DNA of 64,000 nt, from sequence record PP496436.1; one strand, 5' to 3'. Under the pieces are notes generated by a model. The model saw only the letters and a program-made list of their open reading frames with translations, was not told the DNA's origin and ran no database searches. A program made the translations under genes and the position numbers. Below are positions 746 to 48,394 of the stretch, piece after piece. Positions within the stretch are counted from its first letter, which is position 1, and the number at the start of each line of letters is the position of its first letter.

Positions 746-3127
746 ATGGCAGCCAAACCACCTGACAAGATCTCACGACGTAAGCTACAAGAACTTCTGG
801 ATCGGAAGGAGGATCAACTCAAGTCTGATCGCCGATCCAAGAAGATCATCACCAAGCTCACGTCGTTCGAGAAGGCGAAAGCCGAAGCCAGAGATATCAC
901 CAAGCCCTATCACAAGGAAGTGACTCTGGACGACATCATGGACCTTCGCGGAATGCTGGGCGGCAATCGCGCCATGGCCCCGTTGGAAGGTCAGTTCCTG
1001 ATGACACCGGAGGAAGAACAGATCTCGGAACTGGGACTGTCGGAAACGCTGGATGAGATTTTCTCCAGTGGTATCGGCTTGCCTCCCGACCTGAAGATCG
1101 ATGACCGGGATCTGAAAGCGCTGCCCAACGTATTCGAGTGGACTACCTCGAAGATGGGCGCGAAGATGAAGCCGTACGCCCGGCAATACGAAGTGATGAT
1201 CAAGTCCTGCTCTGAGTGGTGCCCACCGTGCACTAAGAAGCGCTGGCCGAAACACAAGATGGGTTTTGCGAAATCGTTCCACTACTCGCCCGCTCTCCCC
1301 GTGGATTTTGACGTAGCCAACATTGATGACTATGTTCAGCACTTGGAGAACGGGCGTTGTCCGTGTTGCAAGAAAAGAAAATCGGAGTTGGTGCGCAGCG
1401 GGCAGTTGCCTCTGGTCACCGAACTGGACATGTGTCTGGGTCAACGGGCGGGTAAGTCTGCAACGATCTATTCGCTGATCCCCTACCTCATTCACCGCTG
1501 GCTCAAGGTTCCTTCCCCGGTACAGGCGCTGGGACTGCTGGACAACACCCTGCTTTCTGGGGTAGTGGTTGCCCTGACCTACGCTAAAGCCACGTCCCTT
1601 CTCTGGCAGCCGATCCACAACGCTATCTCGAACACCGGCTGGTTCAAAGAGTACAACGCGCTGTTGAACCATTACCAAGAGTTCTACGGCGAGGAATTCT
1701 TCAAGCTGAAAGACTCGTTCGTGCAGTACGGCCATCGGAACATGATCTTCAGTCCCTCCGGCCCGAACAAGCGTACACTCCGGGGTGAGACCCGTATCTG
1801 GACCGGCACTGACGAAATCGGTTTCTTCTACCATGGCGATGACGGCGATGACAAGGAACGTGCATCGGCCAACGAGGTATATGTATCGCTGGGTAACTCC
1901 CTGTTCACGGTTAAGAAGGCAGCGGAAACTGCCTTACTGTCCGGCATGGATGGTATCCCGATGACTCTGATGGCGAACATCTCCTCGCCATCGAGCTACA
2001 AAGATAAGATCATGTCGCTGATCCGTGAGTTCGAGAACGAGCCTACCGTCGTGACCATGCACTTGCCTACCTGGGAGTTCAACCCCAAGACCAGCAAGGG
2101 TGACTTCAAGAAGGAATACGCGGCGGATCCCGTCAAGGCAGACCGTGACTTCGGGGCTAACCCGCCGATGTCCGAGAACCCCTACCTTCCTGACCTCGAA
2201 CCCATGAAGCGTCAGGTGCTCAAGTCCCAGCGCAACATGGTAGAGTACGAGTACAAGCTGATCAAGGCTACTAACGGTGCACCGCAGCGCTATGCCAAGA
2301 TCAAGCGACTCCGTGAGTTCATGGACAAGGTGCCGAAGCACGTGATGACCATCGACGCCGGGCACAGCAACAACTCCTTCGCCTTGACCGTTGGTTATCC
2401 TGAGATGTTCCGAGGGAAGCTTCGTCTGGTGTGCACGGGTGTGGTGGAAGTGGCACCGACACATGGCCAGAACACGATCAACTTCACCAAGATCGCCAAG
2501 GAAATGATCTACCCGCTGATCGAGCACTTCAACGTTGGTCTTGTGGTGACTGACCGCTGGAACTCTTTGAAGCTGCTGCATGACATCGAAGACGAGTACG
2601 GTATCTTCACGTTGCAGTACAGTCTGCGACCAGACGACTTCAACTTTATCTACGACTACTACATGGATGAAGACTTCGCGTACGCCCGTATTCCCGTGCC
2701 TGAGATTCCCATTGATCAGATAATGGACGTCGATATCGATGAGTATCCGAAGTGCTTCGGTCCCGGCAACAAGACCACGGGCAGGCCAATGCCTGTAGCG
2801 CACATGATCCATCAGTCGCAAACAGTTCAGGTGAATAGCCGGGGCAGTGTGGACAAAGGATTGGGTCTGACCGATGACATCTTCCGTGCGTTCAACTTGC
2901 TCACCTATGTCTGCGTGGATGAGGAGTACGTGGAAGAGTACATGCTGCTAACGGGTTCGGTCGCGGGTGAGAAGCGTGCCATTGGCGCAATGGCAAGAGG
3001 TGGCATAACTCCGGGTAGTCGGGGCAGTGGTGGCAAGGCCATGAGTACCTCCGTCGGTGCGGTCGCGGGGGCGAGCACAGCCTCCGGCAGCGGCGGGAAC
3101 GGTGTATTCAGCCGTACGTCCCGCTAA
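746..3127 (+). CDS. terL: Terminase large subunit
   Basis: Walker A-like GQRAGKS, Walker B-like WTGTDEIG, RNase H-like nuclease motifs TIDAGHSNNSFAL, VTDRWNS and TDDIFRA; lies upstream of a portal-like gene. Confidence 0.88.
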   Translation: MAAKPPDKISRRKLQELLDRKEDQLKSDRRSKKIITKLTSFEKAKAEARDITKPYHKEVTLDDIMDLRGMLGGNRAMAPLEGQFLMTPEEEQISELGLSETLDEIFSSGIGLPPDLKIDDRDLKALPNVFEWTTSKMGAKMKPYARQYEVMIKSCSEWCPPCTKKRWPKHKMGFAKSFHYSPALPVDFDVANIDDYVQHLENGRCPCCKKRKSELVRSGQLPLVTELDMCLGQRAGKSATIYSLIPYLIHRWLKVPSPVQALGLLDNTLLSGVVVALTYAKATSLLWQPIHNAISNTGWFKEYNALLNHYQEFYGEEFFKLKDSFVQYGHRNMIFSPSGPNKRTLRGETRIWTGTDEIGFFYHGDDGDDKERASANEVYVSLGNSLFTVKKAAETALLSGMDGIPMTLMANISSPSSYKDKIMSLIREFENEPTVVTMHLPTWEFNPKTSKGDFKKEYAADPVKADRDFGANPPMSENPYLPDLEPMKRQVLKSQRNMVEYEYKLIKATNGAPQRYAKIKRLREFMDKVPKHVMTIDAGHSNNSFALTVGYPEMFRGKLRLVCTGVVEVAPTHGQNTINFTKIAKEMIYPLIEHFNVGLVVTDRWNSLKLLHDIEDEYGIFTLQYSLRPDDFNFIYDYYMDEDFAYARIPVPEIPIDQIMDVDIDEYPKCFGPGNKTTGRPMPVAHMIHQSQTVQVNSRGSVDKGLGLTDDIFRAFNLLTYVCVDEEYVEEYMLLTGSVAGEKRAIGAMARGGITPGSRGSGGKAMSTSVGAVAGASTASGSGGNGVFSRTSR

Positions 3128-3409: not shown

Positions 3410-5224
3410 ATGATCCGAATGAACAACCGCATGCGGTTATCAGACAAGAATGGTCGCATGACGACCATCGCGTCACCGCAGAGCATGAGTGGCAGCATGG
3501 GTGCAGGGGGTCACCCCATGACTCGCGCCATGGGTGGCAACGCGTCCACCCGAGACAGTTTGCTTGACGGCATCCTGAAGCTCGACCCGGATGTCATGCG
3601 TCAGATCTACATGGACATGTACCTGTTTGATCCGACCATCGGCGGCGCCACTGACTTGCTGGCCCAGAGCCCTTGGTCGGATTACGATCTGGTAGACGCT
3701 GAGCCGGATCAACTGGACGTCTTCTACCGGTCGATGGAACTGCTGAACTACCGAGAGCTGATGCCGGAGTTCACCATCGACTACCTGACGTTGGGCGCCG
3801 CTGTAGGTACGCCGTTGTACAGCGTATCGGAAAAGGCATTCACCGACATCATCCCGCACTCCATTGCCAGTATTCAGGTTCAGGAAGTTCCGCTGTATTC
3901 CCAAGACCCTGTGCTGACGCTGCTGGTGCCGGAAGAGATGCGCACGTTCGCGACCAGTCAAGACCCGTATGTGGTCAAGATGCGGCAACGCATGACACCG
4001 AAGATGGTGGAAGCATTCCGAGCGCAGGAGGTTGCACTTGATCCGGTGACCACTCTGTACGTACCCCGCACTTCGTTCTCGACAGTGCAGCAAGGCGTAT
4101 CGCTGTACACCCGCTTGATCCCGATCTACTTGCTGGAACGTCTGCTGTACCGTGGCACGTTGACCGAGGCTACTCGCCGCCAGCGCTCTACGTTGCACAT
4201 TCAAGCCGGTGACGATCTGTGGAACCCGGACGACAACGAGCTGAACAGTCTGGTGCAGTTGTTCCTACAAGCCGAGCAAGATCCAGTATCGGCCATCGTC
4301 GCTACCCAGATGAACGTGCAGACTCAGGAGATTCGAGCTGCCGGTGACTTCTGGAAGTGGACGGATAACCTGGAGCAGTTCAACGACATCAAGCTGCGAG
4401 GCATGGGGATCAACGAATCCTACATGTCAGGTGATGTGACCTACGACAACCTGAGTACCAGTGTGACCATGTTCCAAGAGCAGCAGGACTCGCTCCGGGA
4501 AATGATGGTACGCAAGACGCTGTACACCAAGGTGTTCCCGGTCCTGTCGATCACCCACGACTTCCGCCGCAAGGAAGAGTCGCGGCATGCTCGCCGCGAG
4601 ATGGCTACGGCCAAGGCTGCGCAGAAGCGTACCCTGAACGATTCGTTCGCGTTCCAGGTGAATGACAAAGCATCGCTGGTCATCCCCAAGGTGGTATGGC
4701 ACAAGAAGCTGCGTTCCATGTACACCGAAGGTTCGTTCGATATCCTTGACAAGCTAGCGGAAGCAGGTCTACCGGTTACCCTCCGGGCGTGGGCTGCTGC
4801 TGGGGGTTACGACCTGGACAGCGCTATGCAGGCCATGGCCGATGATGCCAAACTTCGGAAACAGGTGTCAGACTTCAAAGCCGAGAACGGTATCGATGCC
4901 GGTACGGAAAACGACTTCAACCTCGACGGGGATACCGAGCTGTCGATGGTCAGGTCCGCATCCGCATTGCTGGATAAGGCAATGGGTGGCCGGGGTATGA
5001 AGCCACTGGGTCTGCTGGGCCGTGAGTTCAGCGAGGCGGATTCCGAAGTGGTACGCCATGATCACTCTGGCAAACGCAAGTGGGTTCCTGACCAGCACCG
5101 TGCCAAGCGGGAGGAGAACGATAAGGCGATGAAGGCGTTGAAGCAGGCCTCTGATCCGGACTTCCGTGCCAAGACGATTGCCGCCGTTAACCGTAGACAA
5201 GGCGCGAGAAAGACTCGCGGCTGA
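3410..5224 (+). CDS. Probable portal protein
   Basis: 604 aa following terL; portal-like helical core (KLRGMGINESYMSGDVTYDN...). Confidence 0.7.
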   Translation: MIRMNNRMRLSDKNGRMTTIASPQSMSGSMGAGGHPMTRAMGGNASTRDSLLDGILKLDPDVMRQIYMDMYLFDPTIGGATDLLAQSPWSDYDLVDAEPDQLDVFYRSMELLNYRELMPEFTIDYLTLGAAVGTPLYSVSEKAFTDIIPHSIASIQVQEVPLYSQDPVLTLLVPEEMRTFATSQDPYVVKMRQRMTPKMVEAFRAQEVALDPVTTLYVPRTSFSTVQQGVSLYTRLIPIYLLERLLYRGTLTEATRRQRSTLHIQAGDDLWNPDDNELNSLVQLFLQAEQDPVSAIVATQMNVQTQEIRAAGDFWKWTDNLEQFNDIKLRGMGINESYMSGDVTYDNLSTSVTMFQEQQDSLREMMVRKTLYTKVFPVLSITHDFRRKEESRHARREMATAKAAQKRTLNDSFAFQVNDKASLVIPKVVWHKKLRSMYTEGSFDILDKLAEAGLPVTLRAWAAAGGYDLDSAMQAMADDAKLRKQVSDFKAENGIDAGTENDFNLDGDTELSMVRSASALLDKAMGGRGMKPLGLLGREFSEADSEVVRHDHSGKRKWVPDQHRAKREENDKAMKALKQASDPDFRAKTIAAVNRRQGARKTRG

Positions 5225-5249: not shown

Positions 5250-6683
5250 ATGAAAAACAATCCACAAGTCACGCGCCTTTCCGCCTTGGCTGCTGCTGGT
5301 ATCAACGTCAAGTCAGGTTCTCCGGTTGATGTCGTGCACCAGCACACTCGCACTCTGGGCAACAACATCGACAAGTTGAGCACGCCTCGTCAGTGGGCCA
5401 TTGCTCATCTGATGAACGAAGCGGCCGACCTGCTGGTTGTAGAAACTGGCAGCCTTCAAGACGACTACATCGACTACTTCAAAGGTGCACTGGAGAAGTT
5501 CGGTGTGTCCTCCCCGGCGGAACTGACCCAAGAGAAGGCTTCCGAGTTCTTCAACTGGATCAGTGACAACTGGAAGAAGGGCGAAGGCCCGAAAGCCGAA
5601 GCTAGCGTGGAAGTTGAGACTGCCAGCCAATTCTCCTTCGTCAAGGTAAGCCAGAACGGTAACACCTACCGGCTGGAGGCCTCGGACACCGGCAACTTCA
5701 AATCCGTCATGATCTGGAAGGGTGGCGTGTGGACGAAGCCAGGTCCGGACGAAGCGTTCAAGGAAAAGGAACCTCACCGCATGCTGGGCGCGCTGCGCAC
5801 CCCTAGCGGCTCGGAGCTGGCTACCCTCAACCTGCCGGAAACTCCGGTGGCAAGCATGGAAGAGATGGCCGAGCTGTTCGGCGCCATGGGTATCGAAGAG
5901 AGCGAGATCCGTCGCTTCTACGGTGGTGGCCCAGAGTGGAATGATCGCAGCGTCTACGACGGCAACATCCCGAGCGTATCCCCAGCTAATCTGGGCGTGA
6001 GCCCAACTTACGCCTACACCGACATGCACCCGCTGCGTGCCTATGAGGCGGAAGACACCATCCGTATCAATGGTCTGGATGCCACGTTGCAATCCATTGA
6101 CAACGGACAGGCCGTGTTCACAGTTGACGGCGTAGATACCACCACGGTGCCGCTGGACAACATCGTGGTCGCTGAAGGTGAAGCCTCGGTAGTAGCCACC
6201 GCCATGGTATCTCATCGCGTACTGGTCACTGCTGGTCACGAAGACCTGACTCAGTACAAGTCGCTGCGTCACGACTTCGAGACTGTTACCGCGAACCACC
6301 AAGAGCTGTCGCAAGTCAAGGTCGGCCCAGCACTGCAAACCCTCGCCAAGGCGGGTAACCGTCGCGCTCTGGTACTGGCCCACGCCGGTGTGCAGCGTAT
6401 CAACGAAGGTCATGCACTGCTCAAAGCCTCCATCGGCTACGGCAAGGAAGCGGCGACCGCCAGTGTCATCACAGAGCTGGCCGATCTGAACAACCTGTGT
6501 GGCAAGGATCAGGTGTCGGCACAAGACGTGATCGACTCCGCGCCGGTGGTCACTCATCTGAAGCAGGGCGAGTTCAAGGCCGACATGCCGGACGTGGTTG
6601 ACTCTTCGGACTTCGAGCTGAACGATCCGCAAGCCGAACAGGCGTCCACGCGCAAGAGCCGCTTCCCAAGCCGCAAGCGCTAA
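5250..6683 (+). CDS. Putative head/prohead core or scaffold protein
   Basis: ATG 5250 after GGAGAG; head-module position; recurrent x-T-A motifs. Confidence 0.5.
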   Translation: MKNNPQVTRLSALAAAGINVKSGSPVDVVHQHTRTLGNNIDKLSTPRQWAIAHLMNEAADLLVVETGSLQDDYIDYFKGALEKFGVSSPAELTQEKASEFFNWISDNWKKGEGPKAEASVEVETASQFSFVKVSQNGNTYRLEASDTGNFKSVMIWKGGVWTKPGPDEAFKEKEPHRMLGALRTPSGSELATLNLPETPVASMEEMAELFGAMGIEESEIRRFYGGGPEWNDRSVYDGNIPSVSPANLGVSPTYAYTDMHPLRAYEAEDTIRINGLDATLQSIDNGQAVFTVDGVDTTTVPLDNIVVAEGEASVVATAMVSHRVLVTAGHEDLTQYKSLRHDFETVTANHQELSQVKVGPALQTLAKAGNRRALVLAHAGVQRINEGHALLKASIGYGKEAATASVITELADLNNLCGKDQVSAQDVIDSAPVVTHLKQGEFKADMPDVVDSSDFELNDPQAEQASTRKSRFPSRKR

Positions 6684-6730: not shown

Positions 6731-8767
6731 ATGACTATCAAGAGTGCTACGTTTGCGGAAGCTGAATCGCAAGCTCAAGGCCTAGCCAACTCCATGGGAT
6801 GGCCGGGTGAGGTAATGGACAACGGTGACGGCACTGTCACTCTGTCGCCACCCGACGCATGGGATGAGGAAGAGAACCCCGGCAAGGTGGCAGCGTCCAA
6901 GCTGACCGGTAACAAGGACTGTCACGTCTTCGCCAGTATGGCGGTACCCAGTGAAGGCGAGTGGATGGCTGTCGTCATTCAAGGTACCCCAGCGCTGGTA
7001 CTCATCGACCAAGGATCTGGTGAAGGCTGGTTGACCCTTCAGGCCCCCGCGGACTTCGATGTTCCGGAGAGCGTGCTGATTCCTTTCCAACAACGCTTGA
7101 CCCAAACGGAAACTGCTTCAATGGACCTTGAACAAGACGTAGAACTGGCAGCAGGGAAGAAAAAATCGGAAGTGGACCAACTTATCGAACTGCGACAGGA
7201 ATACGATAAGCTTCAATTCTCAAAGTCGAAATTGAGCGTACACGGTAAGAACCCTACCAGCTCTCGTATCATCTCAGCGAAGAAAGGGTTGATAGAACGG
7301 GAGAAGGAATTCAAGGACAAGTTGAAGAAATTGGTCCCGTCGGGTCGTATTCCTACCATGGAGAGTTTGCAGAATCGTAAGATGCGGGAATCGGGAATTA
7401 AACCTCCGACCAAAGCTGAGAAGGATTCGGCCAGTGAGCGTCGGATGTTGAAGAGTGAAAAAGACAGGCAGACGAGAGTAGCTACTACAGTAAAGAAACA
7501 CGGAGTAACTGAATCGGAAGCCAATACCTTGCACCGGGGCAAATACCCTAAGTCCTATTATAAGGATGAACGGGACCTGGATGAGATCAGTCATAAGTTG
7601 AAAAATCCTAGGCTTACGGATGAGCAAGAAGCTAAGTTGGAGAAAGAGTTGAAAGACTTGCGCACGAAGTTCAAGGAAAAGAAGAAGAAATACGATGCCG
7701 TCCTCAAGGAAGGGCGGGAGGAATCTTCGGTTCAGCCGGATACCCGTACGCAGGTTCTGGCTAACGTCTCCAGCGACCCGGCCACTCCTGCGTATCAGGA
7801 AGCATCTATCACGGGAGTTACACCAGAAGGCCACATCTCAGTAGCATTCGCTGACGGCGATATCGGTGTGTACCAAGGTAAGTTCGACCCTGCTGGTCTG
7901 ATGCCAATCGCGGAAGCGGCAGGCGTTGAAGTTGCCAGCTTCAGACACCACACCATGGTTCTGGCCAACGTTGGCACTGCGGCAGCACCTGAATACGCCG
8001 AAGCAGAGGTGATTGGTTCCACCGAGGAAGGCCATCTGGAAGTCGCGTTCGCCGATGGTGACGTGGGCATCTACCGTTCCTTGTTCCACCCTACCGGTAT
8101 CTTGCCGCTGGGTGTGACTGCCGAGACGGCCAGTGTGCTCATCGAGGTGGCCGCACGTACGGCAATGACCCCGGAGCAGAAGCTCAAGCGTGCACAGGAC
8201 CTGCTCAAGCTGCGTACGCTGCACGACAAGTACGAGACCAACACCGACGCCCTGAAAGGCAAGAAAGGTCCGGAGAACAAAGCCAAGCGGGACAAGAACA
8301 ACGAGGACAAGGCCAAGCTCCGTGCCAAGCTGGACAAGATGGGTGTCACATCCCTGCCGAGCAAAGCTCACCTGCAGCGTACCATCAAGCAGCACAGCGA
8401 TCTGCCGACCCGTATGCGTGCATCGGACAAGAAGCCTGCTGCTAAGGTACCAACGAATAAGGCAGCACGGGACGCGGCCAAGAAGAAGTATGCGCCTGCT
8501 AAAGAGGACAAAGGATTAGACATGCGGATTAAGGCTCCGGGGTATGCTGAAAGGAATTTCGGCCCTGCTGCCATGAAACGAAAAGAGGAAAGAAAGTCTT
8601 TGCCCAAAGCTACTCAGGACAAGATCAAGAAGTTGGAAGCAAAGATAGAAGAGACGCTTACGGACATCCATAAGGGTTCCATCAGTAAAAAGGACGTTCA
8701 GACTGCCCGCGACCAAGTTAAGGCTTGGAAAGAGCAAGTCAAAGAACTTTCTACCCCGGCTAAGTAA
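6731..8767 (+). CDS. Modular Lys-rich putative internal head protein with two tandem 68-aa modules (VLAN...P.Y...G...V.FADGD)
   Basis: ATG 6731 after AGGA; duplicated segments start at 7754 and 7958 (204 nt apart); highly basic coiled segments. Confidence 0.6.
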   Translation: MTIKSATFAEAESQAQGLANSMGWPGEVMDNGDGTVTLSPPDAWDEEENPGKVAASKLTGNKDCHVFASMAVPSEGEWMAVVIQGTPALVLIDQGSGEGWLTLQAPADFDVPESVLIPFQQRLTQTETASMDLEQDVELAAGKKKSEVDQLIELRQEYDKLQFSKSKLSVHGKNPTSSRIISAKKGLIEREKEFKDKLKKLVPSGRIPTMESLQNRKMRESGIKPPTKAEKDSASERRMLKSEKDRQTRVATTVKKHGVTESEANTLHRGKYPKSYYKDERDLDEISHKLKNPRLTDEQEAKLEKELKDLRTKFKEKKKKYDAVLKEGREESSVQPDTRTQVLANVSSDPATPAYQEASITGVTPEGHISVAFADGDIGVYQGKFDPAGLMPIAEAAGVEVASFRHHTMVLANVGTAAAPEYAEAEVIGSTEEGHLEVAFADGDVGIYRSLFHPTGILPLGVTAETASVLIEVAARTAMTPEQKLKRAQDLLKLRTLHDKYETNTDALKGKKGPENKAKRDKNNEDKAKLRAKLDKMGVTSLPSKAHLQRTIKQHSDLPTRMRASDKKPAAKVPTNKAARDAAKKKYAPAKEDKGLDMRIKAPGYAERNFGPAAMKRKEERKSLPKATQDKIKKLEAKIEETLTDIHKGSISKKDVQTARDQVKAWKEQVKELSTPAK

Positions 8768-8789
8768 CCACACCTGACTGGAGCATGAC

Positions 8790-9548
8790 ATGAACGTGTT
8801 TGAAATGATTGCCCAGCAGAACGCCGCGATGAAACCCATCGACGTGCACAAGCTGGTTAAAGGCAAGGATGTAGATCCAAAGCTCAAGGAGATGACCACG
8901 GCCAAAGTCGGTATGCCCGGCTTGGCCCAGGCCATTACGTTCGCGGAGTGGTTGCCGTTCGCGGCCAAGACGTATCACTGCTCGCCGGATCCGAAGGATT
9001 ACATTCTGGTCCCGAACATCGTGATGCCATCGGAGATCCCCAACCGGAATGGCGTGGGCTTCCCCTTGCAGCAACTGGTACGCTTCAACCCCGAGACTGG
9101 TTGCCAAGGATTCCGTACGGCAGTCGGCAAGGGTACGTACGCTGATCACCAGAACAACACCGTTGCTCCACTGGCGAAAGGCGTGATCGTGGATTCGTTC
9201 ATGCGACCACTGGAAGGCTTCAAGGGTGGCGTGTGGAAGTTGCTGTTCCTCTTGGCGTACGACCGGTCCAAAGACCAAGCGCTCACCAACGCCATCTTGG
9301 CAGGCACTCGTACCAACTACAGCATGGGCGCGTACCTGACCAAGTACACGTGCTCGATCTGTGGCCGGGACCGGGGCCAGTGTGTGCACTTGAGCGCGCA
9401 GAAAGGTTCGGTGAACTTCCGCAAGGTAGGGAACCAGCTGGCGTACTCGCAGGCATACGAACCGATTTTCTTCGAGACGTCCTCGGTAGAAGATCCGGCA
9501 TTCGTATCGTCGATTACTGGCGCTGACCACCTGCTTATCACTCGGTAA
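8790..9548 (+). CDS. Putative prohead maturation protease
   Basis: 252 aa in head module; DHQN and YSMGA motifs followed by CSICG...C.H resemble phage prohead serine proteases; SD GGAG. Confidence 0.55.
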   Translation: MNVFEMIAQQNAAMKPIDVHKLVKGKDVDPKLKEMTTAKVGMPGLAQAITFAEWLPFAAKTYHCSPDPKDYILVPNIVMPSEIPNRNGVGFPLQQLVRFNPETGCQGFRTAVGKGTYADHQNNTVAPLAKGVIVDSFMRPLEGFKGGVWKLLFLLAYDRSKDQALTNAILAGTRTNYSMGAYLTKYTCSICGRDRGQCVHLSAQKGSVNFRKVGNQLAYSQAYEPIFFETSSVEDPAFVSSITGADHLLITR

Positions 9549-9580
9549 GCAGGAACTCCGTAAGAAGTAGAGGTAACATC

Positions 9581-9739
9581 ATGGGTATCACTACCATTCT
9601 CCTGATCGTGTTGATAGTTCTGCTCGTCTGCGGCTTGCCCGTGTTCCCGTACTCCGCAGGTTGGGGCTACGGTCCATCTGGGCTGATCACGGTGATCGTC
9701 GTGATCCTGCTGATCCTCGTCTTGACCGGACGAATGTGA
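9581..9739 (+). CDS. DUF3309-like 52-aa two-helix membrane protein (absent from ORF track)
   Basis: MGITTILLIVLIVLLVCGLPVFPYSAGWGYGPSGLITVIVVILLILVLTGRM; SD GAGGT; the LP..PYS.GWGYGPSG signature matches DUF3309 as recalled. Confidence 0.8.
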   Translation: MGITTILLIVLIVLLVCGLPVFPYSAGWGYGPSGLITVIVVILLILVLTGRM

Positions 9740-9744
9740 CAACC

Positions 9745-9777
9745 GCCCGCTCTGGCAAACGCTGGGGCGGGCTTTTT
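9745..9777 (+). terminator. Intrinsic terminator
   Basis: GCCCGCTCTGGC-AAAC-GCTGGGGCGGGC stem (G-U pairs) followed by TTTTT. Confidence 0.8.
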
Positions 9778-9825
9778 CGTATCTGCTAATTACAAAACAT
9801 GGATAAATAAATTGGAAGATGGGAC

Positions 9826-11037
9826 ATGATCAAATTCGTGGAGATATCCGCACCTAGTTCGGACTTCGCCAAGACCCTCAAGAAAGGCATACGGGTCGTG
9901 GTCAACATGGGATCTACTAAGGAACCGTCCTATTGGATGGCGACTGTAGCAAAGAACAATGCAGCGAAGGGCACCGTCAACCTGAACTTCGATGATGGAG
10001 ACGTGGCCGAGTACAAAGCTATCAAGTCCAAGGTGGGTATTGTCGGGATCGGAGTTGCCAAAGTCCGCAAGACTGAAATCCCATTGTCTCAGGTTGGCAA
10101 GTGGCTTACTAGTGAGGAAACTACATCACAGTCCTCCTACCTTTCTGACCCTGTCCAGAAGTTTTTAGCTAAGTGGGTAGACTCCTTTGATAAGGACGGG
10201 GCCAATCCTTCAAATAAGAAATACTTGTTAAAGACAATGAAGGACTTATTACCTAACATACCCGAAGAGTATAGAAAACATACGGGTATCCTTTTCCGAG
10301 GGGTTAGGCTACCAGTAGAGGCTGTAACTTCTATTCTCGCGGGTTCTCGACTAAAATTTAAAGATGAATTCATTTCGTATTCCTCCGATAGAGATGCTGC
10401 TGTAAAATTTGCGGCCTATGTAGACTATGATAAAGGAAAAGAACAAATAGGGATAGTAATAAAAGAGGCTAGTAACTCTGTTGCGGTTAATATCTTTGAG
10501 GTATGGGATAACATCTCGTCAAAGTACAAAGATATACATTCTCAATCATTTGTAGACGAGGAAAAAGAAGTAGTACTTCAAAACTCCAACCTGGGACTAG
10601 CTACTTCACAGATTGATATGCTACTTATATCTAAAGGTAAAATAAAATCATTAGGGAAGCAGGAGCCTCCCGGCTGGAATAAGTTTCTTAAATCAAGTGG
10701 AATACTTAAAGACATATATTGCATTCCCAACACTAAAGATAATATTAAGGGTGTACAAGAAGTCCTTAGTTTGAACACGACAACTCTTATGAATCCGCAG
10801 AAGGTGTCGGCTGTACTAACCAAACTAGGATTTCCTAAATCTAACGGGGAAACATTTAGGACGTTGTACCTTCCTGACCTAGAGCTTTCTATAAAAGCGT
10901 CTATGGTTCCTCAAGGAATACTGTTCGAGACTGGTAAGGGCTGGCGATTTGCCAAGTTTGAGTATAAACAGGTAGGGATAGCAGAGGATGAAGCATCCGC
11001 TATCAATTTATTTAATAGGATAGCCAAACAAAGATAA
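9826..11037 (+). CDS. Tudor/SH3-like module fused to an R-S-E class ADP-ribosyltransferase-like domain
   Basis: aa13-94 closely similar to the module at 11700-11945; downstream LFRG...ISYSSD...EEKEVVL catalytic motif order; AT-rich from about 10108. Confidence 0.7.
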   Translation: MIKFVEISAPSSDFAKTLKKGIRVVVNMGSTKEPSYWMATVAKNNAAKGTVNLNFDDGDVAEYKAIKSKVGIVGIGVAKVRKTEIPLSQVGKWLTSEETTSQSSYLSDPVQKFLAKWVDSFDKDGANPSNKKYLLKTMKDLLPNIPEEYRKHTGILFRGVRLPVEAVTSILAGSRLKFKDEFISYSSDRDAAVKFAAYVDYDKGKEQIGIVIKEASNSVAVNIFEVWDNISSKYKDIHSQSFVDEEKEVVLQNSNLGLATSQIDMLLISKGKIKSLGKQEPPGWNKFLKSSGILKDIYCIPNTKDNIKGVQEVLSLNTTTLMNPQKVSAVLTKLGFPKSNGETFRTLYLPDLELSIKASMVPQGILFETGKGWRFAKFEYKQVGIAEDEASAINLFNRIAKQR

Positions 11038-11040
11038 TAG

Positions 11041-11070
11041 TTGCACGGGCTGTTTTGGGTGTGCTATAAT
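11041..11070 (+). promoter_or_regulatory. sigma70-type early promoter
   Basis: TTGCAC-18bp-TATAAT with extended -10 TG. Confidence 0.8.
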
Positions 11071-11123
11071 AGCACCATGGCACTATTCAAGCGCCGCCCA
11101 CTATCCCAATGAGGAAAGCAACC

Positions 11124-12833
11124 ATGACCAGATTGACCCTAGCAACCGTTAACGCCGAGATCGCAAAGTCCGGGGGCAAAGAAACTCTGGTCAAGGGTAA
11201 GGGCTACTTCTACTGGATTGGTGGCCGTGCCGACGCTGATCCTCAAATCTGGACTTCCATTTACGTTGCTGCGCTAAACCAGATGACGCTGGCCCAGTGG
11301 CTGGAAGACTGGAAGCGCAATGACGACCAATACAACAAACCTACTCCCGACAAGGAAACCCGCAAAATGGCTATCAGACACGTTCAGACCCTCGCAGCTC
11401 CTGCTCGTCCAAAACCGCCTACCGGTGCAAAAGCAGGTGGCGGCAAGTCAATCGAAGAGAGAATCGAATGGAATGAAGGTAGGATCAAGGAGGCTACTGC
11501 GGAACTGAAAGCCACCAAAGATCCGAAAGCTATTGACAAGATCAAAAAGCAGATTGATATCTACAAGGGTAACATCGCCGGTTTCAAGAAAAGGCTGAAC
11601 CCGGAAAAGAAACCAGCACCGGCCAAAGGTCCTAGCGGTGCTGCTGCCAAGAAGCGTACCACTGCTACTGCTGCACAGGAGACTGCGTCCCCGGCTACCG
11701 ACTTCGCCAAGTCGTTGAAGAAGGGCGTTCGTGTACTGGTCAATCTCGGCAACACCAAAGAGCCGTCCTACTTCCTCGGCGCCATCACCAAGAACAACGC
11801 CAGCAAGGGTTCGGTCAACGTGCTGTTCGATGACGGCGACGTTGCAGAGGTCCGTGCGATCAAATCCAAGGTCGGCATCGTGGGTATCGCCATCGACAAG
11901 GTACGCAAGTCGGAAGTGCCAGCTGATCAGATCAGCAAGTGGCTGGCTGGTGCGGCACCAGCGACCAAGACCCCCGCCAAGCCTAACGAGCTGAAGAAGT
12001 CGCTGGATATCCTCGGTCCGAAGAAGGACTCCAAGGTGCCCTCCAAGCCCGTGAGTAAGGACACCGAAGTACAAGATATGTATGGTCAGCTGGTGGACAA
12101 GATGACAGCTATCTTGAAAGCCAAGAAGAAGTACAGCCCAGCGTTGGATAAGGCAATTGATGACTACGCCAAGCTGCCTACGTCAACCAGCAAGGCCAAG
12201 AAGATCGAAGCTTTGCAGGCAGCTATCGGACTCGCTGATTCTCAGCTGGGTAAGTCCAAACCGTTCAGCCCAGCGGAAGCCCGGAAGGTCATCGGTGCTA
12301 TCCCCGGCTGGAAGTCATCCAACGTGAAGAACAAAGCGTCAGCCACGTTCACCAAAGATTACCCGAACGGTGTCACCGCTACTGCTTACGTCTTCCCACA
12401 ATATGTGTCGTTCCAATACCCGCAAGGTGAGAATGATCACATCAGCGACTTGTCCAAGATCGCAGCTTACATAAAGCAGATCGACGATGATCAAGCAGTA
12501 ACACCCGACCAAGGTAAAGCACTGGATGATCTGGCCAAGGCATTGAAGGGCTGGCCGAACAAGGTCCTCCCACGGGATGCCGACGAAGACAACTTCCTGC
12601 TGCGCGGGTTTGAAGATGATGATCTCCCGGCTGATGTGGAGCCAACTGCTGACGCCATCGAAGCGCACGCAATCTCGATCTTCAAGAAGATGAAAAGTGT
12701 TGACAACTTCAAGAAGAGCAAGATGTACCACGGCGACAACACATACTCCTTCTCGGCTGGCGGCACCGTGGGCTACGTGTACTTCGATGAAGATGGCGTC
12801 GGCATGGTCCGGGCAACACCGTTCGAAGAGTAA
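11124..12833 (+). CDS. Modular Lys-rich protein containing the Tudor/SH3-like module; possible internal start at 11367
   Basis: SD GAGGA before ATG 11124; module DFAKSLKKGVRVLVNLG...FDDGD...KWL at 11700-11945. Confidence 0.7.
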   Translation: MTRLTLATVNAEIAKSGGKETLVKGKGYFYWIGGRADADPQIWTSIYVAALNQMTLAQWLEDWKRNDDQYNKPTPDKETRKMAIRHVQTLAAPARPKPPTGAKAGGGKSIEERIEWNEGRIKEATAELKATKDPKAIDKIKKQIDIYKGNIAGFKKRLNPEKKPAPAKGPSGAAAKKRTTATAAQETASPATDFAKSLKKGVRVLVNLGNTKEPSYFLGAITKNNASKGSVNVLFDDGDVAEVRAIKSKVGIVGIAIDKVRKSEVPADQISKWLAGAAPATKTPAKPNELKKSLDILGPKKDSKVPSKPVSKDTEVQDMYGQLVDKMTAILKAKKKYSPALDKAIDDYAKLPTSTSKAKKIEALQAAIGLADSQLGKSKPFSPAEARKVIGAIPGWKSSNVKNKASATFTKDYPNGVTATAYVFPQYVSFQYPQGENDHISDLSKIAAYIKQIDDDQAVTPDQGKALDDLAKALKGWPNKVLPRDADEDNFLLRGFEDDDLPADVEPTADAIEAHAISIFKKMKSVDNFKKSKMYHGDNTYSFSAGGTVGYVYFDEDGVGMVRATPFEE

Positions 12834-12844
12834 GCTGTAAATGA

Positions 12845-12974
12845 TCCATGTATCGGAGGTACCGGGGCTAGAGTCATAGCTGGTTCCGGGAGTCACCCTA
12901 AGAGGTGTTGTGCTGAGGATTTCACCCTCTTAGGTTTCGTCCGCGCTTTCCTTACCGATTGCGCGGACTTTTTT
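12845..12974 (+). ncRNA. Candidate structured small RNA ending in an intrinsic terminator
   Basis: Follows a CTGTAAATGA motif; 11-bp stem 12897-12934; terminator GTCCGCGC/GCGCGGAC-T6 at 12939-12974; no credible ORF. Confidence 0.35.
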
Positions 12975-13000
12975 ATCTGCAAAATATATTCGAAAATAAG

Positions 13001-13030
13001 TTGTACACAATGATGCCCACGTGCTATACT
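13001..13030 (+). promoter_or_regulatory. sigma70-type early promoter
   Basis: TTGTAC-18bp-TATACT, extended -10 TG, AT-rich UP region. Confidence 0.75.
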
Positions 13031-13101
13031 GGAATCACGGGGGCGTGATGCCCCACCAATACCGGCCCGAACGGCCACCACTGTCCCGAGAGGAATGCAC
13101 C

Positions 13102-13419
13102 ATGCCAGCCATGAAGCCAAAGACCACCCCAAGCGAACGCGACGTCCAGATTGCAATAAGCCAACTGGAAAATTTGAAGCTGGTAGCGATGGGTGAGATG
13201 GATCCGGTATATCGCGATGATCTGCAGTCGTGGTTGGCCGACTGGTATCCAGACTTTTCGTGGAACCCTAACCAGTCAAGCGTTCAGATTCAAGCGATGG
13301 TTAACCTTCCAGAGTTCGCTGACGTCGAATTAAATCTTAACCGTCGGTATGATGTGGACTTCTACAAAGAGTTGGCTGACGGCGTAGCAGAGTCCTGTGA
13401 CTACCAACTCTCGCGTTGA
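13102..13419 (+). CDS. Hypothetical early protein
   Basis: Conserved leader CTGTCCC-GAGAGGA before ATG 13102. Confidence 0.65.
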   Translation: MPAMKPKTTPSERDVQIAISQLENLKLVAMGEMDPVYRDDLQSWLADWYPDFSWNPNQSSVQIQAMVNLPEFADVELNLNRRYDVDFYKELADGVAESCDYQLSR

Positions 13420-13462
13420 CTCCCCGTTGTCCAATCAACCCTATCCCAAAGAGGAATGCACC

Positions 13463-13936
13463 ATGACTTTCAAGTTCGCTCCAGAGTTCGACGTTGCCAG
13501 CCGCACTTACCGTATCGAGTCTGACTTCGCTACCAAGGTGTTGACTTTCATTGAAACACTGTGGGGACTGCCGGGCGCTGGTGGTACGCCGATCATGGAA
13601 CGTTCCATTCAGATGTCCATGCAGAAGACCGAAAGCCACGAGATTCGTGTTACTAACTACTTCCAAGACAGCACGCTGCTGAAGACTGTCGTGGCCGTCC
13701 GTGCTTTCATGGACATGCGAGATGCGCCTAGCGCCGTGACCAATCACGTGTTCGTAGACGGGTTTGTCCCGAGCGAATCGTGGGGCTCAGACATCATGAT
13801 GACCTTCAACTCGATCATCATGGACGCCAACAAGTGGATGCGGGTAGCCGCTGAGATTGGTGTGGATCAGAGCATCCACTTGAATGAACTCCAGATGGAC
13901 ATGCAGGACAAGATGAACAAGGCCACTGGGCTCTGA
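13463..13936 (+). CDS. Hypothetical early protein
   Basis: Conserved leader CTATCCC-AAAGAGGA before ATG 13463. Confidence 0.7.
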   Translation: MTFKFAPEFDVASRTYRIESDFATKVLTFIETLWGLPGAGGTPIMERSIQMSMQKTESHEIRVTNYFQDSTLLKTVVAVRAFMDMRDAPSAVTNHVFVDGFVPSESWGSDIMMTFNSIIMDANKWMRVAAEIGVDQSIHLNELQMDMQDKMNKATGL

Positions 13937-13995
13937 TCCACAACCGGGACCGCAAGGTCCCACCCCAACCTAATATCCCAAAGAGGAACGCAACA

Positions 13996-14484
13996 ATGAA
14001 CAAGCACAATCTCGCAACTGGTTCCCTGATCCTTCTCGTCACCGGCTTTCTGATGGCAGGTGTTGTAACTCAAGCAAGCGCCGCAATGATCGCTCCCCCG
14101 GTCCTCCAGACGAATGGTAATGGTCCGGCACCGTCCGCCAACTTCGCCCGCAACGAAGAGATGTTCTGCAAGAAGCTGGGCCGCGTGTCGTATACCGCCG
14201 CTCAGATGCGTGAAGCTGAAGCCACACAGGAAGAGACCACGGCTGCGGTAAGCATGATGACCACCACGCTGCGTCCAGACACCCGTGAGATGATGATGTA
14301 CTCCGTTGTCAACGCGGTGTACGAAGATGCTGCAAAGCTCACGCCAGAAGAGATATCGTTGAATTTGTTCTCTAATTGTATGGGACGCGTTGATCCCGCA
14401 ACCACGTACACTCAGAACGGACGCCCACCGGTACAGCAAGCACCGACAGCGGTTTCCACTACGCCCAGACCAATCACCCATTAA
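13996..14484 (+). CDS. Secreted/periplasmic hypothetical protein
   Basis: Signal-peptide-like N-terminus ending ASA; two Cys; conserved leader. Confidence 0.65.
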   Translation: MNKHNLATGSLILLVTGFLMAGVVTQASAAMIAPPVLQTNGNGPAPSANFARNEEMFCKKLGRVSYTAAQMREAEATQEETTAAVSMMTTTLRPDTREMMMYSVVNAVYEDAAKLTPEEISLNLFSNCMGRVDPATTYTQNGRPPVQQAPTAVSTTPRPITH

Positions 14485-16760: not shown

Positions 16761-17741
16761 ATGAAATACATCATCTTCGACGTGACGGTGAGCAAAGGGG
16801 TAAAGAAGAAGGTTCCTGTGATCTTCGATGAGTTCCTTGTGCACGCGGATGTCGCCCGTAAGCTTCAAGACGTATCCAAGCCGCTGAAGCTGCGCCCGGC
16901 CACGGCAGGCTTTATCGACTTCGATGTCAAGCAGACGTACGGGAAGTCTACGTCATTGGGTATCGGTATCGGCATTGATGATTGCGAGATCATCGAGCGT
17001 ATGTATCTCACCAAGGGATATCAGAGCCCGGAAATGGATGATTTGATATCCAGTCTGGTCAGCAAAGCGGAAGCGGTCGCCAGTAAGATGGTAGGTAAGG
17101 TAGCCAACGACAACGGCCCGTTGATTTGCCCGGTATGCACGCGCCCAGACAATCGTCCGCATGAAGGTTGGCACACTATCTACAACTGCCACTTCGACTG
17201 CATCGAAGGTTATGAAGCACTGGCGGAAGGCCAACCGCTCGCGCCACCAGCCAGCGTACCCAATCTCATGGCTGCCGCACGGCAAGCTCTTGACCAGTCC
17301 CGTGCGGCGAAGCAAGAGCCTACGCTGGCCCATGCGTTCACCCATACCTGCCAACTACCCAGCGTGGTGCCGAACGTCCAGATGGACACACGCACCGCCA
17401 AGCCGCTGCTATTCACATGCCAGCGAGCCGTCCAGGCGCTCATTGCAGCGCGTCCGGCCAGCCCCCTATTCAAACGGGCGCACTGGCACTCCAAACAAGC
17501 CCTGATGGCTTCACAGCGCTTCACACAAGCATACCTGTTCCATGCGTACCAGCTCGCGGCGATGTCGGCGTGGGAGGATAACGCGGAGAAGATCGAGTGC
17601 ATGACCTTGATCAACTTGGTGCAGACCATGGACCCGCACAATGAATTACGTGACAAGGTTTTCACGGTAAATACTCAACATGGAACAGTGACTACTCACT
17701 CTCTATCCCAAGCTAAATCCTTTGCTAGCAGGCAGGTTTAA
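16761..17741 (+). CDS. Hypothetical multi-domain protein
   Basis: MKYIIFD... start; internal CPVC...CHFDC cluster. Confidence 0.6.
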   Translation: MKYIIFDVTVSKGVKKKVPVIFDEFLVHADVARKLQDVSKPLKLRPATAGFIDFDVKQTYGKSTSLGIGIGIDDCEIIERMYLTKGYQSPEMDDLISSLVSKAEAVASKMVGKVANDNGPLICPVCTRPDNRPHEGWHTIYNCHFDCIEGYEALAEGQPLAPPASVPNLMAAARQALDQSRAAKQEPTLAHAFTHTCQLPSVVPNVQMDTRTAKPLLFTCQRAVQALIAARPASPLFKRAHWHSKQALMASQRFTQAYLFHAYQLAAMSAWEDNAEKIECMTLINLVQTMDPHNELRDKVFTVNTQHGTVTTHSLSQAKSFASRQV

Positions 17742-17742
17742 A

Positions 17743-18945
17743 ATGACCACCAAGACAATGCTGTTGAACAACGTCACCGCCATCGATGTAGGCTTCCTGA
17801 CCGCCCAAGGCGTGTTCGGGGCCAGCGTACGCCCTTCGTTCCTTATCACCGGCGAGATGTCCGAGGACGAACAGGTGGTTGTGGATTTCTCCACGATCAA
17901 GAAGTCCATCAAGGAACTGATCGACCACAAAGAGCTGGGCATCGATCACAAGACCATCGTCATCGGTCCAGCGTTTCCAAAACCTGAAGATGACGATAAC
18001 TTCACCGTCACTATGGGCGGTCCTGTGGGTGGTTCCGTTCGCATGACTGCCCCGGAAGACGCTTTCGTGTTCTTGTCCGAACGTTGCCCCAACGCACTCA
18101 GCGAAGACTGGAACACCAAGGGTAAGCTGCTGTCCGATTGCGTTGTAGTAGATCGTCACGGCGGGCTGGTATCCCCAGAGCGCTTCGTCATTCCGTTGGT
18201 GCAAGAACTGCTGAGCCGCGAACTGCCAAAGCTCTTCCCCACGTTGACCGACATCAAGGTGTTCTACAGCAAAGACGTCACAGCGCCGTTGCAGCCTAGC
18301 CACATCCGTGTGGGATCCCTGTTCAAAGGCGAAGATCACAATCCGATGATGGACACGCTGGTGGAAGACAACATCCGCCTCACCTACTCCCACGGTCTGC
18401 CCCGCTCCACTAGCTGGGGCTGCCAGAACATCCTGCACGGCCACGTCAGCGTCGTGACACTGGCTATGCCTCATTCCCGCTCCGACCATACACAGGCTAT
18501 CCTGCTGGACATTCGCCATGATCTGGCGGGTAAGTATCTGGTGGCCGAGCGTGACGTAATCCCAGCGGATGATGAACCGTCTGTACTGGACGACGAAGAT
18601 GCCGTATTGGAAGGCACCGACGAAGATCAGGACGCTAACTCCGACGATCTGATGGACGCACATACCATGTCTGAAGACGATGCGCCGGACGAAGTTGACG
18701 ACGTAGCTATCCAAGGTACGAACATCGGGTTCGAGTCCATGTCTCGCGGCTCGTTCAGCCTGTTCCTGCCACACGGCAGCACCCAGATCAAAGTGATGCC
18801 GACGGACACCACCGTTGAAAACATCGCCCAGTACATCTGGGACACTCACGTCCAGCCCGCCATCGAAGCCTACGAACTGACCGACGTATCCATGTACGTC
18901 TCGGAAGGCTTGGACAAAGGCGCATTCATCCGTCAGCAGGTATGA
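17743..18945 (+). CDS. Two-domain QueD/6-pyruvoyltetrahydropterin synthase-like (T-fold) protein
   Basis: DFSTIKK..IDHK, YSHGL...GCQNILHGH and DTTVENIA motifs; acidic insertion. Confidence 0.75.
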   Translation: MTTKTMLLNNVTAIDVGFLTAQGVFGASVRPSFLITGEMSEDEQVVVDFSTIKKSIKELIDHKELGIDHKTIVIGPAFPKPEDDDNFTVTMGGPVGGSVRMTAPEDAFVFLSERCPNALSEDWNTKGKLLSDCVVVDRHGGLVSPERFVIPLVQELLSRELPKLFPTLTDIKVFYSKDVTAPLQPSHIRVGSLFKGEDHNPMMDTLVEDNIRLTYSHGLPRSTSWGCQNILHGHVSVVTLAMPHSRSDHTQAILLDIRHDLAGKYLVAERDVIPADDEPSVLDDEDAVLEGTDEDQDANSDDLMDAHTMSEDDAPDEVDDVAIQGTNIGFESMSRGSFSLFLPHGSTQIKVMPTDTTVENIAQYIWDTHVQPAIEAYELTDVSMYVSEGLDKGAFIRQQV

Positions 18946-18974
18946 GCATGCTTGCACAACTCCGAGGTAACACC

Positions 18975-19908: not shown

Positions 19909-20009
19909 CTGTACTTTTCTACCTTTTCCTCCCGACTTACTACCCCTTGGGCAAGCTAATTCCAAGCATGTCCAACGAAATATATAACCTGCTTTAGGAG
20001 TGCTACCAG

Positions 20010-48333: not shown

Positions 48334-48381
48334 AACCCCGTGTAAAACTATCTGTCAAATGGTAGTTGCACGGGGTTTTTT
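48334..48381 (+). terminator. Intrinsic terminator overlapping the -35 box of the next promoter
   Basis: AACCCCGTG...CACGGGGTT followed by TTTT. Confidence 0.75.
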
Positions 48382-48394
48382 CGTGTGCTATAAT
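48366..48394 (+). promoter_or_regulatory. sigma70-type early promoter
   Basis: TTGCAC-17bp-TATAAT with extended -10 TG; closely matches the 11041 promoter. Confidence 0.85.

Follow-up and report, generated by a model that had tools for sequence, protein, structure and literature searches.

Phages are known to load effectors into their heads by three routes: a short peptide, as in T4, the MuF domain and giant polyvalent proteins. The first 64,000 bases of the Pseudomonas phage vB_PpuM-Illi-2 (bases 1-64000 of PP496436.1, a jumbo myovirus genome of 201,178 bp; this stretch is called the window below) hold what may be another arrangement, a small module with a predicted Tudor-like fold that occurs four times in three nearby proteins, g6, g9 and g10. 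Outside this phage the module is joined to many unrelated C-terminal domains, and a sequence motif next to it is shared with the major capsid protein. With a probability of about 0.5, this phage branch of the Tudor domains is the constant N-terminal part of proteins that enter the prohead during assembly, undergo trimming by its protease, remain in the head and are probably ejected.

Several described systems resemble the locus. In MuF-domain head proteins, such as gp7 of SPP1 and F of Mu, a constant N-terminal domain is combined with many unrelated C-terminal enzymatic domains (PMC5512222, PMC9503650). As in Illi-2, genes of this system lie near portal and morphogenesis genes, and delivery of the effectors from the head into the host has been proposed. 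The targeting-sequence system of T4, which consists of the internal proteins, Alt and the gp21 protease, is alike in its short N-terminal leader ending in a Glu-containing site, in a capsid protein with an N-terminal propeptide site of its own and in variable cargo that evolves fast. In T4 as in phiKZ and SPN3US, the prohead proteases cut after Glu to remove N-terminal propeptides, which are found on capsid, internal and ejected proteins and often have several sites (PMC10052503). The ejection and inner-body proteins of phiKZ and SPN3US are likewise paralogous internal proteins cut after A-x-E, often at several sites, with the mature C-terminal part staying in the head (PMC10052503).

Illi-2 comes from Estonia and infects P. 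putida; with eight close relatives it makes up cluster G3 of jumbo myoviruses in the CEPEST collection (PMC7616413), and the portals of these nine sister phages are at least 97% identical. Its portal and capsid proteins group it with two Vibrio phages, GR7B and GR11A, as well as PaBG-type phages, the GR11A portal being 51% and the GR11A capsid protein 53% identical to those of Illi-2. All of the genes of interest are labelled hypothetical in the annotation of PP496436.1. The four module copies of the window are as follows (HMM, hidden Markov model; iE, independent E-value; aa, amino acids).

7745..7915, + strand: module R1 of g6, aa 339-395; HMM domain iE 1.3e-30, 15.2 bits with an HMM of external members only
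7949..8113, + strand: module R2 of g6, aa 407-461; HMM domain iE 2.3e-31, 25.6 bits with the external-only HMM
9862..10107, + strand: module of g9, aa 13-94; five-stranded barrel and C-terminal helix in the AlphaFold2 model
11700..11945, + strand: module of g10, aa 193-274; BLASTP against g9 E = 1e-45, HMM iE 3.5e-30

These copies are real, in frame and homologous, with a similarity that far exceeds what chance would give. Between the modules of g9 and g10, 57 of 86 residues are identical (66%; E = 1e-45 by BLASTP) and the two g6 repeats share 48% identity (E = 3e-16), while g6 R2 is 30% identical to g9 over 61 aa (E = 1e-8 by BLASTP) and 28-30% identical to g10 over 61 residues (E = 2e-7). 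The external-only HMM provides a check that avoids circularity, as it was built from 46 foreign family members with this phage group excluded; the best of 2000 shuffled g6 sequences scored 7.8 bits with it. The g6 repeats have in common with the modules of g9 and g10 only the barrel core of ~55 aa and are acidic (isoelectric point, pI, 4.2-4.5), and the modules of g9 and g10, which have an additional helix, are basic (pI 9.7-9.9).

An initial annotation, made from the letters of the window, had placed the copies at 7754 and 7958 in g6, 9862-10107 in g9 and 11700-11945 in g10 and had called the last two closely similar; the copies do lie there, at residues 342 and 410 of g6, 13-94 of g9 and 193-274 of g10, in annotated frames, and the similarity is as described. 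The literal pattern that it gave for the module is exact in g6 R2 alone, since one-residue insertions or deletions set the other copies apart from it. Its count of four is correct for the window, where no further copy was found, and falls short for the genome. A search of the rest of the genome adds Illi2_00137 and Illi2_00144, on either side of the NAD-dependent ligase gene, and a broader family HMM adds Illi2_00124, beside the baseplate hub, so that the genome holds seven copies in six proteins. With three of the six module genes elsewhere in the genome, the module is not confined to the head-gene region in which it had been placed.

The Tudor-like fold that had been guessed from the sequence is well supported. 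AlphaFold2, run on residues 1-109 of g9 with a 49-sequence alignment, gave a model with a predicted local distance difference test (pLDDT) score of 83, in which 71 residues reach at least 90; its strands are at residues 23-27, 36-45, 50-55, 60-64 and 71-76, followed by a helix at 87-93. The top Foldseek matches are the Tudor domains of SMN, TDRD1, SETDB1, SGF29 and PHF1 (probability 0.99-1.0), and in a viral structure library the only significant matches are the GR7B and GR11A paralogues. When the 49-sequence profile is compared with PDB sequences, nearly all matches are Tudor domains (KDM4A, PHF19/20, ARID4, 53BP1), with weak E-values of 0.008-2. In Pfam, the window proteins match BAHCC1-like_Tudor at E = 0.0014-0.004, with 17-19 bits that lie below the 28-bit gathering cut-off. 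Searched singly, 60 family members gave matches to Tudor_5 in 11 cases (best E = 8.5e-7), BAHCC1-Tudor in 6, Tudor_3 in 3 (best E = 3e-6) and Agenet in 2. Residues Y36, F55, D56, D57 and G58 are kept in at least 90% of the sequences, at positions that match the cage-residue sites of Tudor domains. The agreement between AlphaFold, Foldseek, the PDB profile and Pfam makes a Tudor-like (SH3-like) five-stranded barrel a well-supported prediction for the module. The family is thus a viral branch of the Tudor superfamily for which the curated collections have no fitting model.

The module is widespread outside Illi-2. A word-indexed search with residues 1-105 of g9 matched only the nine sister phages, and an exhaustive profile search reached further: the profile of the four copies, run against 1.84 billion representative proteins, returned 99 matches. 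About 50 of these are protein clusters of 150-700 aa that have one full-length N-terminal module and unrelated C-termini. The partners include SprT-like, BRCT, SNF2 helicase and zinc-ribbon domains, all four identified by Pfam, as well as leucine-rich repeats, a domain with a conserved R, S and E-x-E, and many unknown domains. Most members have a hydrophobic leader of 10-35 aa directly before the module. Others (P0015, P0026 and P0078) have no leader and start directly at the module, which indicates that the module, and not the leader, is the constant element. In one more distant relative (L021), the gene next to a g5 homologue encodes a g6-like protein whose very start is a single module. In another contig (L022), P0015 occupies the position of g10, starting exactly where the module region of g10 starts and continuing into a different C-terminus. 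No module was found in the region around the portal gene of PaBG.

A second class of matches consists of giant proteins with tandem Tudor/Agenet-like repeats. These are distant relatives outside the phage family, and low-complexity noise was ruled out as their source, P0010 having 19 such repeats in tandem. The giant proteins are 1000-7600 aa long, with up to 19 repeats (GDAVEANFKGKGRWFKGKV..DGTVDVRYDDGDTEE) that match the core of the phage module, and they appear to be cellular Tudor/Agenet-like arrays. The contigs that carry foreign members are mostly 1-5 kb; the one long contig (L015) is a 79-kb marine sequence. At 8972-14318 of this contig, in a setting of unannotated genes that may be structural, two module genes alternate with genes that share other repeated N-termini (MSYTLRHNRTVAGDITLD...), and a neighbouring protein of 201 aa has a similar MKYIKV start (MKY[IV]KV) and lacks the module. 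The array looks like a set of paralogous, possibly virion-associated genes of an uncultured phage.

Among the sister phages the exchange of partners can be followed at close range. The g6 orthologues of six sister phages are mosaics in which the modules and their immediate flanks are kept and the outer segments are replaced or deleted, and the six aligned g10 orthologues are mosaic in the same way, with flanks exchanged among phages whose portals are nearly the same. The g9 gene, present in four of the nine phages, Illi-2, SKa-4, Amme-1 and Pori-4, and absent from the other five, Lauda, Aura, Peetri, KoPa-5 and Voja-6, forms a clean insertion-deletion cassette between a terminator and the g10 promoter. 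Variation of the payload among homologues had been named beforehand as a test of the idea, and it is abundant in both the sister-phage mosaics and the roughly 50 foreign clusters. Together the nine sister phages and the foreign clusters support, at the level of sequence, a module that acts as a mobile cassette joined to interchangeable partner domains.

Smaller units also seem to shuffle among g9- and g10-type genes. The order in g10 is a conserved N-terminal domain, a variable linker, the motif E-T-A-S (nucleotides 11679-11690), the module, which starts 4 residues past that motif, a variable middle and a conserved C-terminal domain. A unit of the form ..YPNG.TA...FP..V.F.YPQGE.D...D.S.I..YI..ID in the C-terminus of g10 (12261-12833) is duplicated in the variable middle of the g10 of Peetri. 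Outside the window, a strongly acidic stretch of ~130 aa, rich in D and E, precedes a zinc ribbon (CPRCG...CKRCG) in Illi2_00144 (PP496436.1 125973-127136), whose gene is directly upstream of neck and connector genes.

The link to the head comes from the motif E-T-A-S. In all six-frame open reading frames (ORFs) of at least 50 aa in the 201-kb genome it occurs six times, once in a non-coding frame and five times in real genes: the major capsid protein, g5, g6 (twice) and g10. The major capsid protein, Illi2_00158, is a protein of 362 aa encoded at 138.8-139.8 kb, remote from the head genes of the window, and its E-T-A-S at aa 67-70 closes an N-terminal segment, after which the conserved shell domain follows. 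The other module proteins have variants at a similar spacing, namely K-Q-E-I-E-T-S-A in Illi2_00124, V-E-I-S-A in g9, M-E-V-G in Illi2_00144 and A-E-I-V in Illi2_00137, and E-[TVI]-x-x is found 5-12 residues before the barrel in every Illi-2 module protein. The equivalent capsid site of GR11A is Q-E-E-A-V, and its module proteins have L-E-E-A-A and T-E-E-T-A-G; the module proteins of GR7B have I-E-E-A-G and K-E-E-A-G. With both its capsid and its module motifs altered, GR11A indicates that the motif changes in step in the two kinds of protein. Because the motif is shared with the capsid propeptide boundary, g5, g6, g10 and probably the other module proteins would be substrates of the prohead protease, and as putative substrates they would be components of the prohead interior. 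The protease encoded at 8790-9548 is, by analogy, the presumed enzyme for the E-T-A-S sites. This pattern suggests that the motif-bearing proteins are processed by the prohead protease and hence internal to the head, and it makes an association of the module proteins with the head plausible. Illi2_00124 and GR11A_00120/121 lie in baseplate blocks, and Illi2_00144 adjoins neck genes.

Two proteins of the portal-protease block, g5 and g6, carry the motif in informative positions.

5466..5627, + strand: helical pro-domain of g5, aa 73-126, ending V-E-V-E-T-A-S (E-T-A-S at nucleotides 5616-5627)
7109..7120, + strand: first E-T-A-S of g6, aa 127-130, exactly where the conserved N-terminal domain gives way to the variable region
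7928..7939, + strand: E-V-A-S of g6, aa 400-403, between R1 and R2
8123..8134, + strand: second E-T-A-S of g6, aa 465-468, just after R2

The pro-domain of g5 (~50 aa, Y.DYF...LEKFGV.SP.EL....A.EFF) aligns with the N-termini of two module proteins, the metagenomic P0059 (E = 9e-9) and GR11A_00025 (E = 3e-8), and both alignments stop at the motif; residues 95-138 of g5 match phrog_28651. Judged by these alignments, the pro-domain behaves as a second mobile element that is separate from the barrel. In g5 itself the module went undetected even with the broad HMM, and a BLAST alignment that had proposed one covered the first strand only and was rejected. In g6, an acidic N-terminal domain is followed by a basic coiled region, the two tandem modules and a basic C-terminal region. 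The basic coiled segments that had been ascribed to g6 are borne out: the fragments flanking its modules have a pI of 9.2-10.1 and contain 20-26% Lys plus Arg. A g6-like protein, P0026, has A-E-T-A-A where g6 has its second E-T-A-S. The coiled basic segments, the putative cleavage sites and the gene position make g6 a candidate prohead core or scaffold-like protein.

The remaining features of the neighbourhood are these.

746-3127: large terminase gene
3410-5224: portal gene
5250..6683, + strand: g5 (Illi2_00005), directly after the portal gene
6731..8767, + strand: g6 (Illi2_00006), between the portal and protease genes
8790..9548, + strand: head maturation (prohead) protease, annotated so in the record; matches phrog_18299 at E = 5.9e-62
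Between the protease gene and the terminator-like hairpin: g8, a membrane peptide of 52 aa
9745..9772, + strand: terminator-like hairpin, 12-bp stem followed by a T run; conserved in Lauda
9826..11037, + strand: g9 (Illi2_00009), with leader, module and low-GC payload
10165..10581, + strand: payload domain of g9, with conserved R (FRG), S (SYSS) and E-x-E (EKE)
10801..10998, + strand: small domain at the C-terminus of g9, with a homologue inserted in Pori-4 g10
11041..11070, + strand: sigma-70-like promoter of g10, TTGCAC-N17-TGCTATAAT, with a conserved 5' leader
11124..12833, + strand: g10 (Illi2_00010), whose N-terminal domain matches phrog_9154 at E = 9.4e-18
11041-11070, 13002-13030, 48366-48394 and PP496436.1 185552-185581: the four sigma-70-like sites of the genome

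The hairpin at 9745-9772 closes the block of portal, g5, g6, protease and g8. For the protease, the phrog_18299 match stands alone, as no Pfam family was found at E <=0.1 and no PDB sequence matched. Long antisense ORFs overlie real genes throughout the genome, which has 55% GC; examples on the minus strand are 5313-6632, 17725-18957 and 19956-22250, among others. These are artefacts and a trap for automatic annotation, since greedy ORF calling prefers two of them over Illi2_00144 and the capsid gene. The promoter form TTG(C/T)AC-N17-GTGCTATA(A/C)T has only four sites in the 201-kb genome, which precede g10, g11, a gene for a 156-aa protein at 48462 and Illi2_00216. At all four the conserved 5' leader ends in CCACT(A/G)TCCC..GAGGAA before the start codon, and g12 and g13 have the same ribosome-binding context as this class. 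No late-promoter motif shared by the regions upstream of the capsid, sheath, portal and module genes was found.

The g9 gene encodes a 12-aa leader with V-E-I-S-A (nucleotides 9838-9852), then the module and then the payload, whose GC content is 0.39 (10108-11037) against 0.55 for the genome and whose closest relatives come from AT-rich marine metagenomes. This suggests a recent acquisition and fusion to a resident module copy. Profile searches with jackhmmer link the payload to P0028 and P0031 and align the small C-terminal domain with aa 374-439 of P0008 (E = 8.2e-25). In an alignment of 11 payload sequences (g9 and 10 foreign ones), no sequence departs from the R of F/Y-R-G or the S of S-W/Y-T/S, and the E of E-x-E-V/I is nearly invariant; the domain with these R, S and E motifs occurs also without the module. 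The order R, S, E-x-E is the one expected for R-S-E ADP-ribosyltransferases (ARTs), and this pattern alone does not define the family. An ART domain had been assigned to g9 outright in the initial annotation, and nothing apart from the motif bears this assignment out. None of the 11 sequences matched an ART family in Pfam at E up to 5, a payload profile search of the PDB found no ART either, a comparison with T4 Alt gave no similarity and the relatives found in the large database by profile search have no Pfam domain. A single-sequence AlphaFold model of full-length g9 had a pLDDT of 34 and was unusable. Going by its motif, the ART label is a reasonable guess for the payload and not a finding.

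In the arrangement proposed here, a typical module protein would begin with a short leader or a longer propeptide, followed by a Glu-containing cleavage motif and the barrel. After the barrel would come a short helix (E-I-P..I.K-W-L), a linker rich in Lys, Arg and Pro and an exchangeable C-terminal domain. In Illi-2 the putative cleavage motif can be written x-E-T/V/I-A/S-S/A, the same as at the capsid propeptide boundary. These multi-domain proteins would be built into the prohead and trimmed at the motifs by the prohead protease; the trimmed proteins would stay inside the head and would probably be ejected with the DNA. The barrel could be the common anchor that holds the cargo on a shared internal ligand, which might be a core protein, the interior of the shell or DNA. 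With its two acidic barrels set in basic coiled segments, g6 would be the core or scaffold-like member, and its barrels could pair with the cargo or share the ligand of the cargo; g9, g10 and the three genes outside the window would be members of the cargo type. A more specific version holds that the Tudor-like barrel is itself the hitherto unrecognised folded adaptor for head loading and retention in this jumbo-phage lineage. Any domain fused behind it would enter the prohead on a core of the g6 type, be released by the protease and leave with the DNA at ejection, and the barrel would be a natural, programmable tag for packaging proteins that acts next to a peptide targeting sequence or in its place. 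This version is decidedly tentative and, on the present evidence, doubtful.

Several points weigh against the proposal. The TM-scores of the Foldseek matches reach 0.67 (by target length) with E-values of only 0.057-0.2, weak values explained by the small size of the domain. As the protease has no Pfam or PDB match, its preference for cutting at Glu is an analogy. No virion proteomics for this phage group was found in the literature, nor was any literature on the group beyond the isolation report (PMC7616413). Three of the module genes are far from the head genes, and Glu is found at the leader position in only about a quarter of the foreign members. The acidic barrels of g6 and the basic barrels of the cargo are a poor fit to one common ligand. 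From their sequence, which is near-consensus upstream of g10 and g11, the four sigma-70-like sites look like a small class of strong host-type promoters that would mark an early gene class. Two further points bear on the module as a loading tag in particular: the leader found before the module in most members could be a T4-like targeting peptide, and g5 has the same pro-domain and motif and no barrel.

These last two observations, along with the module-less neighbour on the marine contig that begins like the module proteins, are what would be expected if the proteins are packaged by way of a leader or propeptide that serves as the head-targeting signal, as in T4, and the barrel and basic linker act after ejection as a tether that holds the payload on DNA or on some host protein, for instance RNA polymerase. 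The payloads that can be recognised are DNA-associated (SprT-like, BRCT, SNF2), and the basic cargo module and helix are followed by a linker rich in Lys and Arg, which fits such a tether and also counts against the module as the loading tag. Tudor-like barrels that bind RNA polymerase are established in CarD and in the Mfd interaction domains, but neither a CarD nor an Mfd domain is among the Pfam and Foldseek matches listed. The explanation is also strained by P0015, P0026 and P0078, which lack any leader, by the acidic barrels of g6 and by the conserved F-D-D-G-D loop, whose acidity makes it unsuited to contact with DNA. On balance it is possible and somewhat unlikely. It is improbable that the proteins are not virion components at all and instead serve in the early or middle takeover of the host, with a Tudor-like domain for protein binding in common, and that E-T-A-S and the nearby protease gene mean nothing. 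Such a role could account for the sigma-70-like promoters, with their shared 5' leader, upstream of g10 and g11, for the terminator that splits g9 and g10 from the portal-protease block and for the three module genes among replication genes such as those for ligase and Nudix. It leaves unexplained that all five E-T-A-S sites in real genes fall in the capsid protein, g5, g6 and g10. These last three are where the motif was first noticed; on that condition, the chance of finding it anywhere in the 362-aa capsid protein is ~0.007, and there it sits at the propeptide boundary. The alteration of the motif in step in the Vibrio relatives, the position of g6 inside the portal-protease block and the module genes in the baseplate blocks and beside the neck genes also speak against takeover proteins. 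The nearly fixed distance of 5-12 residues between the motif and the first strand in all Illi-2 module proteins, and the further motifs after each barrel in g6, would fit a barrel that is a docking exosite, presenting the adjacent site to the prohead protease or ordering the processing, and not a cargo anchor. The capsid protein and g5 have the motif without a barrel, and the leaderless members offer nothing to cleave; a docking exosite is very unlikely.

If the proposal of trimmed, head-resident module proteins is correct, a whole lineage, to which jumbo phages of P. putida, Vibrio phages and many marine phages that are uncultured belong, loads its effectors by means of a small Tudor-like barrel with a protease site beside it, a unit that has been copied onto many payloads and is exchanged between nearly identical phages. 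The Tudor superfamily would then have a new viral branch, and an unstudied prohead protease would gain a candidate cleavage motif. A simple sequence rule for spotting injected effectors in metagenomes would follow, as would a packaging tag for foreign proteins in a jumbo phage of a biotechnology host. Even if the link to the head fails, a multi-copy Tudor-like family with varied enzymatic partners remains, and it appears to be undescribed so far.

The comparison with the known systems brings out what is particular to this one. Among the top-ranked papers on the subject, none mentions a Tudor-like domain in internal or ejection proteins of phages, and neither do two comparative-genomics surveys (PMC5512222, PMC9503650). 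No MuF domain was matched by Pfam in g5, g6, g9 or g10, and none is among the matches listed for the 60 family members. Unlike the MuF proteins, the Illi-2 proteins have a Tudor-like barrel of ~60-80 aa, several paralogues per genome and a putative protease site before the barrel. Polyvalent proteins combine at least two disparate effector domains in one polypeptide that is delivered with the DNA (Iyer et al. 2017, PMC5512222); several small domains are present in both g9 and g10, none of them an identified effector, and most foreign members have one payload. phiKZ and SPN3US belong to a different phage lineage, and in the papers listed no Tudor-like domain is reported for their ejection and inner-body proteins. 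The eukaryotic Tudor, Agenet and hybrid-Tudor domains (SMN, SETDB1, KDM4A, PHF1/19/20, 53BP1) share the five-stranded barrel, the F/Y-D-D-G at the turn between strands 3 and 4 and the aromatic residue of strand 2. The phage module differs from them in its apparently incomplete aromatic cage, its extra C-terminal helix and its basic linker, and in its viral context with no known methyl-lysine or methyl-arginine ligand.

T4 offers a comparison of gene order as well as of mechanism. In T4 (NC_000866, L019 122742-127208) the alt gene lies between baseplate genes and the DNA ligase gene, as several module genes do, and Alt is packaged in the head; no module was detected in Alt or its neighbours. 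In Illi-2 (PP496436.1 102501-127136) and GR11A (L017, L018), module genes flank the ligase gene and adjoin the genes of the baseplate hub. The arrangement may reflect a conserved synteny of injected-protein genes across distant myoviruses. The tag of T4 is a peptide of ~10 residues, whereas that of Illi-2 would be a folded domain, and several members here have no leader. A small barrel that marks a protein for transfer with DNA does have a counterpart in the SH3-like translocation-signal domains of the TraI relaxase (PDB 4l0j, 5n8o), which are among the Foldseek matches; these have 10-12% identity and belong to type IV secretion, and the likeness is at the level of the fold.

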